From Oopsacas minuta (Eukaryota; Animalia; Porifera): a stretch of 64,000 nt of DNA. The DNA is taken from positions 62,001 to 126,000 of the forward strand of contig JAKMXF010000298.1 in NCBI GenBank assembly GCA_024704765.1. The letters are read 5' to 3'. Positions 1 through 6,037 of this stretch are shown here, one piece after another (position 1 is the stretch's first letter; each line of letters opens with the position of its first letter). The translations under genes and the position numbers were made by a program. The notes under the pieces were generated by a model. That model was given only the letters and a program-made list of their open reading frames with translations. It did no database searches and was not told the DNA's origin.

Positions 1-1114
1 CCCAGTCTCGGTGTAGCTCATTATTCTCGTCCGGCTGAGGCCATTCTACTTCACTAATAACATGAGAAGTTTGGAATACTAAAGCTAACCAGTAACTGCC
101 CACGAATTCAGCTACAAAGTTGAAGAGAATTATTTTCCAAACTGGCATATAAAAGTATAAGAGAGTTATTCTGTAATTTATATGCAAGAACTTTCCTATA
201 TAGAATTGAGCTAGCTGAGAATAAGTAGGAATAGTTAGAGTCATAGCGCTATTCCTTCCGTTTCTAAGCAAGAAGAAATCTTGGAATCTAGTCTTAAGAC
301 CTAGAAAGCAGTAGACTAACGGTACATACACGTGCTGGTAGATATAGCGAGGCACCCAAGGCTGGTAACCTTTGATACGACGGATATCTGCTTGATGCTC
401 ATGTGTATAGATATCAGGATCTCTGCCGTCTACATTTGTGAATGGGTGATGTCCCATAGTGTGCTGGTGTATCCACATAAATATAGAAGCACCATGGAAC
501 AGATCATGAACAGCCCCGAATACTCTCCAGACCCAGGGTTTATGAGTTATAGAGAAGTGCGAGGAATCGTGTGTAAATGTCATTGCTACCAATGCAACAT
601 CAAATCCCCAAATAGCTGTCATAAACAGTGAGAACAGCATGTTGTCATGGTTATGCATTACAGTGAAGGTGCAGACAAACGCGAAACCTAGGAAGAATGC
701 ATACCTCACAAACATCCACGGATCATATTTAGGATCTATATTATTATCTTTGAAATATTTGTCAACTCTTTGTTTCAGAGTCCGGTAGAATTCACCACGG
801 GCCGGATAAACCGGCCATTCATTAGTTACCAACTCTCCAACATAAAATTTCTCTAAGATTTTGAAAGCCTTATCACTATGATATGATTCAAATAACTGCG
901 AAATATCACGTCCAGCACCTAACGCAATCTGGTCAGCACCACCTGGATGTTTCTCAATGAAAGAACTGACGTCATAAACCTTCCCGTGAACAGCGACATG
1001 AGCATTATCTCTACGATTGTAAGTAGCAAGTTCCTCACAGGTATAAGTACGTATTGCTTTAGCTGGTTTAACTATTCCATTTGTTAGACAGCCGTTAGCT
1101 ATGATATCTGTCAT
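1..1114 (-). CDS. Cytochrome b5-fused front-end (Delta5-type) fatty acid desaturase, intronless in the visible part, 3' end beyond window edge
   Basis: Hand translation from ATG 1114 is open to position 1: MTDIIANG...KVYDVSSFIEKHPGG (cyt b5 HPGG)...GAGRDISQLFESYH...THDSSHFSITHKPWVW (His box 1)...WIHQHTMGHHPFTNVDGRDPDI (His box 2)...WLALVFQTSHVISEVEWPQPDENNELHRDW. Absent from the ORF track, probably because its stop lies outside the window. Confidence 0.93.
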   Translation of the reverse strand, partial: MTDIIANGCLTNGIVKPAKAIRTYTCEELATYNRRDNAHVAVHGKVYDVSSFIEKHPGGADQIALGAGRDISQLFESYHSDKAFKILEKFYVGELVTNEWPVYPARGEFYRTLKQRVDKYFKDNNIDPKYDPWMFVRYAFFLGFAFVCTFTVMHNHDNMLFSLFMTAIWGFDVALVAMTFTHDSSHFSITHKPWVWRVFGAVHDLFHGASIFMWIHQHTMGHHPFTNVDGRDPDIYTHEHQADIRRIKGYQPWVPRYIYQHVYVPLVYCFLGLKTRFQDFFLLRNGRNSAMTLTIPTYSQLAQFYIGKFLHINYRITLLYFYMPVWKIILFNFVAEFVGSYWLALVFQTSHVISEVEWPQPDENNELHRDW

Positions 1115-1241: not shown

Positions 1242-4033
1242 TTATTTAGGAATTAAAGGCAGTCTTTCGTAGAATAGTATATAAGCTTGTGACTGGAATA
1301 CTTCTTCACTACTAACCTTACTCACCATGGAATCACTAATATAATACCAATCCTCTGCAGGCTGTATGTGTGTACTGAACTCATAAGGATTATGCATGTG
1401 TGTACTAGGATGTGTTACTGGTAAAGTAGGTTTGGAAGCTCCAGCTGATTCTGTAACAATATCCATAGGAACCTCTCCTTCTGTATCTGCTGTATCTGTT
1501 TCTATTCTGTCATTTTGAGGGAATTTAACTTGACTGCTCCAATCAGCAATATTAACATAAGCTATATAGTGTCCTCCTAGCATGCCACCTGAATGACTCA
1601 CTATTCCTCTCAGACAGTATAATATGGAGTTATCACTATCTCTAGCCACAAGTGTATCATTAACACAGTAAGGTGACATGTCTAGTACTAGAGGGAAGCT
1701 TATTTGTTTTCCTATCTTCTGTAGACGTAATCCTACTTGGGAGAATCTTTTGAGATGAATAGTGAGGATAGGAGGTAGAGATTTTATGTGGAATTGTTTG
1801 GTAGCGTCACTGAAAAGACATTTAGATAGATCTATACTTTCTTGACTACCCTCCTTATCATCATCTCCATTATCATCAGATAGCTGAGGATTACAGTGTA
1901 TACATAGATAGTCTCCGTATAGAATTTCAGGAGAGAAGAATTTTGCAAGAAAGTACTCTAACGTATCTTGACCTGAAGGTGTTGGTATTCGCAGTCTAGT
2001 TATATCTTTGGATTTGACTCTTTCTGGCTGTGTATCTGTAGGCTGTGCGTCTGTAGGCTGTGCATCCATAGGCTGTGTGTCTGTGGGTTCTGTAATCTCA
2101 GGACTAGAATGTTCTATTTCCATTTCTTGTCGTGAGTCTGTGTCAGATCCTTTTTGAGTTTGGTCGTTAGGAGATTCAATAGCAGTAATGTTGTCATTAT
2201 CAATTACAACATTATCTATAGGTAGAACAGAACCTGGTCTATTATCAGATATCTCGTCATTATCTTCAGGATTATCAGATTTCTCGTTATTATCTTCAGG
2301 ATTATCAGATTTCTCGTCATTATCTTCAGGATTATCAGATTTCTCTCCATCATCCTTAGGATGTGATGTATTTTCAGATATATCTTCATTATGTTTGTTT
2401 CTATAATTTACATCCATCGAAGCTCTATGTTTAATTCATTCATCCCATTAGTTAGATGCTTATCATGTTCTTTAGAGTCTTTACATTCTTCCTTGCTATC
2501 TCCAACTGTTGTATCAGTATTTTCTCCTTCAATTTCGCTTTTACCCCTATGTTTGGGTATAGGTATATTTGGCGTCAGTTGATGCTCATTGGATGTATTT
2601 TGGAAATCTTGAATACTCATAGTTTTACTGTTCTGCTTTTCTAATCGTTTCTTTTCTTTCTTGCTCAATTTAATTTCACCTTTCTTAAGTTGTTTTTCTC
2701 CTTTCTTCGTTTGGGAAGATTTCGGAGGATTTTGAAGCTTGCTAGGATGCTTCTCAATCGGTAATGGCAATGATATATCTAGAAAAGCTTCATTCACAGA
2801 GAAGATAGCCGTACAAGTGTGACATTTAACCATACTCAGTATTTCTCCACCAAACACATCATCAATAAAAGTACCAGTAAACACGAATATGTTTTTAAAC
2901 TCGCTAACATACTTCTTCAATAACTTCTTCTTTTCTTCAGGATAGTTCTTGAACTCTGTCTTATGTTCTGTTATTTCAAAATGATTCAAAAATGCAACTT
3001 TCAATCGCTTAATTTCCTCGTCCTTAATCATGTCAATTAGGAATCTTAACAACTCATGGCTATCCTGTTGAGAGCCGTTAGCGAACTTTCTATGTTTCTT
3101 AGCTATAGCTTGCTGTACTTTCTTTGGGAGATATCACACACTTTTTTGAATGAGGCTTTTTGCCGATTGACAAATCATGTTGTTTAATCTTAGTTTGTTT
3201 TATGAGGTGGGAGAGAGCATTTGTTAGAGCTCCAGGAGCTGTTGCAGCGTTAGTTATATAACTAAATGTTATAGGCTCTAAATTAGGATGTTTCTTGGGT
3301 ACTAAAGTGAACTCAGTACGATCTAACGTGTAACACAGCTCTCTCTTAAATGTACTCAAATACAGGAGATTCTGTAAGGCTGAATTGAAGTAGCAAGTAT
3401 TACCGAGGTTGTTTAACCCAATTACACGGAAATTACGAGTAATAGTATCTTCTATAGGTAAATCTATATGTGATAGATTCCTACACGGGGAATGAGGTTT
3501 CTTGCTGTTACTAAATACTTTCTTAGCTAAAGACAAACTACTCTCTAACTTCCCTTTTATTAATTCTTGAGCTATATACCTATCACACTTGTAGCACCAT
3601 ATCGTATAATTACTAACACATAACGTTAAACAGTGACTGGGTTCAGATTCATAATGTTTCAGACTATGTTGATTATCGTATCTACCACATCTGGTCTCAA
3701 AGCATTGCATACAGAACCAAAGTTCTCCACTGTCATTATTTGCAGTAGTATCCTCTTTAGATGCAATCTGTGCTTGCATGCAAGCTAAACATTTCACAGA
3801 TTTAATATTACACCCCCCCTTTTTGGCGAGCTTGTTTGTTAGGTGCTATTGGTTGCTGATATTTCCTAACATGTTTACATATAGCTTCATCTTTATCATT
3901 TAATTCTACAGTTTTCATCTTCAGGAGGGTTATCTAGAGCAGTAAGTTCTATATCCTGATTCGTTGGTGGAGTATTTGTAGATTTATCTGCGCTTTTTGA
4001 TTCTGACCCTTTGCCCTTTTTCTTGTTTTCCAT
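1242..4033 (-). CDS. Ubiquitin-specific protease USP16/USP45-like (ZnF-UBP + USP domain), interrupted by four single-base frameshifts
   Basis: Segments: MENKKKGKG (ATG 4033); AICKHVRK; KCLAC...LWFCMQCFETRCGR...HSLKHY...WCYKCD (ZnF-UBP); GLNNLGNTCYFNS (Cys box); QQDSHELLRFL; FGGEILSMVKC; LTIHLKRF; HSGGMLGGHYIAYV (His box); WYYISDS; AYILFYER. The joins need +1,+1,+1,-1 shifts and have no plausible intron. Confidence 0.85.
2026..2085 (-). repeat. 4 x 15-bp coding tandem repeat (TQPMDA/AQPTD-like peptide repeat) in the USP insert
   Basis: Plus-strand units GGCTGTGTATCTGTA / GGCTGTGCGTCTGTA / GGCTGTGCATCCATA / GGCTGTGTGTCTGTG. Confidence 0.9.
2241..2360 (-). repeat. 4 x 30-bp coding tandem repeat (SDNPEDNDEK-like) in the USP insert
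   Basis: Unit ATTATCAGAT(A/T)TCTCGT(C/T)ATTATCTTCAGG at 2241, 2271, 2301 and degenerate at 2331. Confidence 0.92.
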
Positions 4034-5191: not shown

Positions 5192-6037
5192 TCATTCATC
5201 TTTCCCAAACTTCCTTTTATACCTCTCATGAGTAGACTCAGAGGATAGCAATACTGTATGATTCTGGTACTGTTTGGCGCGTACAAACTGAGCATCTGTA
5301 GAGAATATTCTATCTAAAATCTCCCAGTTACTGAAATTACAAACAAAGCTGTAGTGATGGAAATCATGATGTTCATTCGGATACACAAATGGCAGATGAT
5401 ACCCAGAATGGTCTATAATATTCTTAAACTGTACTATCAACACCCAAATTATAACGAGTAGCATGTGTCCACCGAATATGAGAGGTCCAACAATAACTCC
5501 GAGTCCATTAGAGATGAAATGCTCTATAGGATGAGTATACAAGCTAGCAACAGCATACGGAGCAGTGAATTCATGATGCATTTTATGGATATGTTTGTAG
5601 AAGAATGGAACATGTAGTAAACGATGTGTGCAGTAGAACCAGACTTCCTGTGATAAGATATAGCACAAGACAAGGAAAATACTCTCTAGAAAAGATGGTA
5701 ACACCGTGCTGGAAGATAGACCACGCATAGCTGCAATCTTAGGGAAAGGAAGTAGCACAAAAAAAGATATGACAATTTGATTAAACGCTGTGACAGCAAA
5801 AGTATGCATAAATTTCTTTGCATCAATCGGAGGTATGTTCTTATCAGGCTGTATCTTATATTTAGCCAAAAAGACAGGTTTTCCTGTCAAATCAACAAAG
5901 CTGAAGACAGCAATAAAACTCCAGTAGATTAGGTTAATAGTCACCAATGGTAGAATGACAAAGATATTGAAGTTATCATGATTACACAAGTCAAGGGTGA
6001 ATGACCAGATAGAGGAAGGGAGAGACAATAATTCCAT
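5192..6037 (-). CDS. FAXDC2: Fatty acid hydroxylase/sterol desaturase family protein (FAXDC2-like)
   Basis: His boxes HRLLH, HKMHHEF, HSGYH and HHDFHH; KYKIQPDKN and YTHPIEH motifs; hydrophobic segments. Confidence 0.85.

Follow-up and report, generated by a model that had tools for sequence, protein, structure and literature searches.

A Mortierella-type front-end desaturase gene in the glass sponge Oopsacas minuta, a candidate for the Delta5 step of demospongic-acid synthesis

The stretch of 64,000 nucleotides analysed here (the window) comes from the glass sponge Oopsacas minuta and corresponds to positions 62001-126000 of contig JAKMXF010000298.1 (C298:62001-126000). It starts inside a gene that almost certainly belongs to the Mortierella-type clade of Delta5 fatty-acid desaturases. 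Judged from its sequence, this is probably a functional, intronless nuclear gene for a front-end fatty-acid desaturase of the endoplasmic reticulum membrane with its own fused cytochrome b5. By analogy with the characterised members of the clade, Delta5 regioselectivity is also likely. We tentatively propose, at a level somewhat short of probable, that it encodes the enzyme that inserts the Delta5 bond in the very-long-chain Delta5,9 acid pathway of sponges, and that the gene dates from the opisthokont ancestor, has persisted in sponges and cnidarians and has disappeared from Bilateria, in which Delta5 chemistry passed to FADS-type enzymes.

The gene and its protein

In the minus-strand frame running from position 1114 to position 1 of the window, translation gives 371 sense codons from the ATG and no stop, and the other two minus-strand frames of the same interval are crowded with stops. 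The full ORF occupies C298:61729-63114 (L001:1229-2614) on the minus strand and encodes 461 amino acids without an intron, with its stop codon present. The preliminary description, which gave no strand, quoted four desaturase motifs, and all four are present in the minus-strand translation. It also remarked that the gene was missing from the ORF list. This is so for a single reason: the list omits ORFs that run off an end of the window, and this one runs off its start. The 3' end and the third histidine box, which it proposed to retrieve, were recovered from the contig outside the window, where QTVHH (residues 399-403) lies at C298:61906-61920.

The protein carries features of the front-end class (Table 1): an N-terminal cytochrome b5 domain with its HPGG motif, three histidine boxes, the third of which opens with glutamine, and two hydrophobic hairpins. 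The H-x3-HH spacing of the second box is typical of the Mortierella-type clade, FADS enzymes having H-x2-HH. As in the family in general, NADH-cytochrome b5 reductase would supply electrons, which the fused heme would hand on to a di-iron centre bound by the histidine boxes. Oxygen activated there would strip two hydrogens from the acyl chain and leave a cis double bond near its carboxyl end.

Table 1. Coordinates of the desaturase gene, its protein features, two neighbouring genes and the other membrane desaturase genes of the genome
Feature	Position	Strand	Residues	Details
Desaturase CDS, 5' part	window 1..1114	-	1-371	Codons 1-371 of a 1386-nt intronless CDS; ATG at 1114
Desaturase CDS, 3' remainder	C298:61729-62000	-		272 nt ahead of the window start; holds QTVHH and the stop
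Cytochrome b5 heme-binding domain	window 830..1039	-	26-95	Pfam PF00173, E 8e-22
HPGG motif	window 938-949	-	56-59	In the cytochrome b5 domain; invariant across aligned relatives
FA_desaturase domain			164-434	Pfam PF00487, E 1.4e-28
Hydrophobic hairpin 1	window 572..721	-	132-181	Two predicted membrane spans; Kyte-Doolittle peaks 1.77 and 1.87 (for both hairpins a simple hydropathy scale, which is no topology predictor)
Histidine box 1, HDSSH	window 557..571	-	182-186	Translation and alignment
Histidine box 2, HQHTMGHH	window 446..469	-	216-223	Translation and alignment
Hydrophobic hairpin 2	window 71..169	-	316-348	Leads into the clade motif LALVFQTSHV; hydropathy and alignment
Ubiquitin-specific protease (USP) gene	window 1242-4033	-		Read as several ORFs; zf-UBP and UCH in relatives of 922-948 aa
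FA_hydroxylase gene	window 5192-6037	-		281 aa; PF04116, Pfam family level only; 'FAXDC2' of the preliminary description
FADS-type front-end desaturase	C354:567083-568471 (L003:979-2367)	+		Intronless, 462 aa; HPGG, HDFGH, QIEHH
DEGS-type sphingolipid Delta4 desaturase	C312:155127-156164 (L005:1336-2373)	-		345 aa; distinct from the gene studied
SCD (stearoyl-CoA, Delta9) desaturase	C133:22925-23920 (L007:694-1689)	+		Intact, 331 aa

Place in the desaturase family

Relatives were collected with a word-index protein search, which returned 142. Among the matches listed, the closest are four ENA proteins, 70-88% identical to the desaturase. The sponge matches include Amphimedon (59%, named 'acyl-lipid (8-3)-desaturase-like'), Ephydatia, Halichondria and Corticium, and some twelve anthozoan proteins that carry a source name match 90% or more of the query's length with an identity of 40-53%. 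These are joined by a Capsaspora 'delta-5 fatty acid desaturase' (48%), a Sphaeroforma protein (47%) and proteins from the Mortierellaceae (about 45-46%; for example, a Gamsiella match at 46% named 'delta-5 desaturase'). No Dictyostelium protein is found among the best 120 of the 142 relatives. In the alignment the query and the clade have five signatures in common (HDxSHF..TH, QHxxGHHxYTN with its H-x3-HH spacing, DxRRIK..Q.W, LALxFQxxHV..EVEWP and NxQxxHH). The proteins of Mortierellaceae, Capsaspora, cnidarians and sponges all have them, whereas FADS proteins do not.

A phylogeny that includes the FADS enzymes, as the preliminary description advised, was obtained from a careful IQ-TREE run (LG+C20+F+G4 PMSF, 61 proteins, 470 columns, Dictyostelium sequences not included). 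The query falls outside metazoan FADS, and the split between the Delta5-type clade and metazoan FADS has a support of 100/100. It lies in a group of six ENA and Logan proteins (100/100), taken to be hexactinellid. This group is nested in a sponge clade of 15 sequences (100/99), which is sister to the anthozoans (97/89). Going outward from the sponge and anthozoan clade, the tree adds Corticium (100/96, the animal clade), then one EukProt transcript, then Capsaspora with the ichthyosporeans (96/93), and then fungi, including the Mortierellaceae Delta5 desaturases. The gene tree thus follows the species tree, and we therefore conclude that the gene descends vertically from an opisthokont ancestor. 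Motifs, tree and named matches bear out the lineage originally suggested for the gene, that is, a Mortierella-type Delta5 desaturase and not a FADS enzyme. The accompanying view that such a gene is unusual in an animal genome has to be abandoned: the same clade is found in demosponges, a homoscleromorph and anthozoans, and its descent is vertical. Within Porifera, whose coverage the preliminary description wished to see checked, members are present in demosponges and in the homoscleromorph Corticium in addition to the glass sponge.

The family assignment is in itself routine. It is not new, because the public annotations of sponge proteins (orthologues are annotated automatically in NCBI) and the 2018 paper on cnidarians already imply it. 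In that paper, Surm et al. found that the cnidarian members cluster with the M. alpina Delta5 enzyme (clade C); amoebozoan proteins are also mentioned, with a clade assignment that is ambiguous in its text (PMC6010785).

One reference for comparison is Mortierella alpina DES5 with its orthologues in the Mortierellaceae (acyl-lipid (8-3)-desaturase). It belongs to the same clade and length class (446 amino acids versus 461 in the sponge) and has the N-terminal cytochrome b5 with HPGG as well as HDxSHF, QHxxGHHxYTN, DxRRIK, LALxFQxxHV and QxxHH in common with the sponge protein. The two differ in that identity is about 45%, the host is an animal, and the third box reads NHQTVHH in the sponge but NYQAVHH in Mortierella. 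The sponge and cnidarian proteins (Amphimedon, Ephydatia, Halichondria, Corticium, Actinia, Acropora) are orthologues or co-orthologues with 46-59% identity and all of the motifs. The glass sponge has a single copy of the clade, whereas demosponges have three to four paralogues. Metazoan FADS1 and FADS2 resemble the query in their fused cytochrome b5, their three histidine boxes and the glutamine in the third, but they are only 22-25% identical to it, their boxes are HDFGH, H-x2-HH and QIEHH, and the tree separates them.

The Delta5 desaturases FadA and FadB of Dictyostelium discoideum are members of the same family by literature and NCBI naming only. They form 5,9- and 5,11-dienes from monoenes, the type of reaction suggested here for the sponge enzyme. 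Reportedly they turn Delta9 monoenes into Delta5,9 dienes, and the M. alpina Delta5 enzyme is said to do the same when expressed in canola.

One further occurrence of the family concerns the midge Polypedilum vanderplanki, which carries two Mortierella-type desaturases (P0103 and P0106) on one 36.9-Mb contig. They lie outside the animal clade, and their grouping with a protein of a basidiomycete yeast is weak (91/74). They may represent a horizontal acquisition in a bilaterian that would otherwise be expected to be without the clade.

Genomic neighbourhood and selection

The genes of the window and its upstream flank are arranged in the order ATP-synthase gamma, an unknown gene, FA_hydroxylase, PCMT, USP, desaturase, FWWh, RFC, DNA glycosylase and ALDH. 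The same order is found around an 85% identical orthologue on a 437-kb contig (L009) and, minus the hydroxylase, around an 88% identical orthologue on a 422-kb contig (L006). Since both relatives show this microsynteny on contigs of 420-440 kb, the gene is native and not contamination. Comparison with the syntenic 88% orthologue gives dN 0.065, dS 1.65 and dN/dS 0.04, and therefore indicates strong purifying selection on the desaturase. A copy found in the sequencing run of another study has about 97.6% nucleotide identity and no indels; within the CDS it departs from the gene studied by 19 synonymous and 6 nonsynonymous changes.

Two points could suggest that the ORF is contamination, an assembly error or a silenced remnant rather than a working sponge gene: the search for sequencing runs returned no RNA run, and the ORF has no introns in spite of the animal genome. 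The published mean for O. minuta is, however, just 1.59 introns per gene (365 scaffolds, about 61 Mb, 36 +/- 2.1% GC; PMC10280926). The assembly used here (61,460,524 bases in 365 contigs) places the ORF on a 526-kb contig with typical animal genes. The GC content of the window (35.2%) matches that of the genome, the query groups with other sponges in the tree, and its catalytic motifs are all intact. Together with the conserved gene order in two relatives and the low dN/dS, these observations make such an origin very improbable.

The preliminary description also drew attention to 'FAXDC2', another lipid enzyme in the same co-oriented block. The co-orientation is confirmed, both genes being on the minus strand, but a special link between lipid genes is not: the unrelated USP and PCMT genes lie between the two, and the hydroxylase neighbour, kept in L009, is absent from L006. 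Since the block is kept in L009 with its unrelated genes and has lost the hydroxylase in L006, we regard the arrangement as plain microsynteny between close relatives with no sign of functional coupling, and adjacency was rejected as functional evidence. FA_hydroxylase genes are in any case numerous in this genome (at least ten, including a tandem pair on C310).

Several other observations were made in and around this block. The USP gene ends 128 nt ahead of the desaturase ATG, and an acidic motif, SDNPEDN[DN]EK, is repeated three times in its coding sequence at about positions 2216-2389 of the window. In L006, the interval between USP and the complete desaturase gene, only about 128 nt long in the window, is occupied by a partial tandem copy of the desaturase (L006:8620-9273). 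This copy covers residues 101-319 with 78.5% identity and is annotated as a gene of 154 aa. The ENA sample that yielded the 88% orthologue also contains a full-length copy with 70% identity (P0004; L008:10001-11377). This copy has an unrelated neighbourhood and a different contig coverage label, and is either a paralogue in that sponge or from a second species in the sample.

Partner enzymes and a possible role in Delta5,9 acid synthesis

The preliminary description linked the gene to the very-long-chain Delta5,9 acids of sponges, and its statement that glass sponges carry them is supported for hexactinellids: according to PMC2992992, which cites Thiel 2002, many of them hold Delta5,9 acids of C26-C32. 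Demosponges and cnidarians make Delta5,9 acids as well (PMC2992992). Tracer work shows that in sponges 16:0 is first lengthened to 26:0, after which the Delta5 and Delta9 bonds are introduced in either order, and as of 2013 this pathway was described without any identified enzyme (PMC3826146). The preliminary description likewise knew of no characterised desaturase, and in agreement with this our literature search, with subscription journals outside its coverage, found no gene-level identification of a sponge Delta5 enzyme. Nor did the literature searched contain a fatty-acid profile of O. minuta.

Four types of membrane desaturase are encoded in the genome: the Mortierella-type gene, a FADS-type gene, DEGS and SCD. 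The last of these requires a comment. A six-frame PF00487 scan of the genome gave three loci only, which suggested that SCD is absent. This was rejected when a search with the back-translated pattern GEGxHN[YF]HH recovered an intact SCD gene. The scan had missed it even at E 10, and negatives obtained from that scan need caution. There are also at least seven ELO elongase genes. The partner activities for a Delta5,9 pathway, that is, the SCD Delta9 desaturase and ELO elongases, are thus encoded in the same genome.

Among named proteins, the FADS-type gene is closest to FADS2 of echinoderms, molluscs and vertebrates (45-54% identical), and there is no demosponge or cnidarian protein among its top 120 relatives. 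In the analysis of Surm et al. (2018) the FADS clade contains all bilaterian Fads, with the cnidarian enzymes in two other clades (PMC6010785). The presence of such a gene in a glass sponge may push the origin of the clade back, or it may be the result of a transfer.

If the Mortierella-type gene is the Delta5 desaturase of the Delta5,9 pathway, its physiological role would include placing a Delta5 bond in Delta9-unsaturated or saturated C24-C30 chains to give the Delta5,9 'demospongic' acids. By analogy, we consider such a role quite possible, if not yet probable. Demosponges abound in Delta5,9 acids, and their three to four paralogues of the clade speak for it. Against it, identity to the closest characterised enzymes is only about 45%, and a few changes can be enough to alter the regioselectivity of a front-end desaturase. 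The gene could also be a classical PUFA Delta5 desaturase that forms arachidonate from 20:3n-6 and EPA from 20:4n-3 and contributes little to the very-long-chain Delta5,9 acids. The best-characterised relative, the M. alpina enzyme, uses C20 PUFA (the level of identity to the Mortierellaceae orthologues is given above), and a FADS-type, Delta6-like partner and elongases are present in the genome and could complete a PUFA pathway. Enzymes of the Mortierella-type clade, however, also accept Delta9 monoenes, and the expansion of the clade in demosponges is again to be set against an exclusive PUFA function, which we consider rather unlikely; a dual role remains compatible with these data.

A different assignment would give the sponge Delta5 step to the FADS-type gene at C354 and leave the Mortierella-type gene as a Delta6, Delta4, Delta8 or sphingolipid-chain enzyme. 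The FADS-type gene is full length and related to FADS2, and some of the Mortierellaceae orthologues of the gene studied are automatically named 'sphingolipid delta-4 desaturase'. To our knowledge, however, all characterised members of the Mortierella-type clade are Delta5 fatty-acid desaturases, and the genome encodes its true sphingolipid Delta4 enzyme, DEGS, at another locus. Mollusc Delta5 enzymes of the FADS type do yield non-methylene-interrupted acids (PMC3826146), but demosponges and cnidarians both make Delta5,9 acids, and neither group is represented among the top 120 relatives of the FADS-type gene. On this evidence we think this assignment distinctly unlikely.

Sponge membranes are characterised by the very-long-chain Delta5,9 acids as their signature lipids, which serve as markers in chemotaxonomy and ecology. 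Tracer studies of the 1980s mapped how these acids are made, and the corresponding enzyme was not found at the gene level in our literature search. In the compact genome of O. minuta, the 1.4-kb intronless ORF described here, the FADS-type gene and SCD make up a very small candidate set. The value of the Mortierella-type gene lies in offering a long-standing question of biochemistry a compact candidate that can be tested directly.
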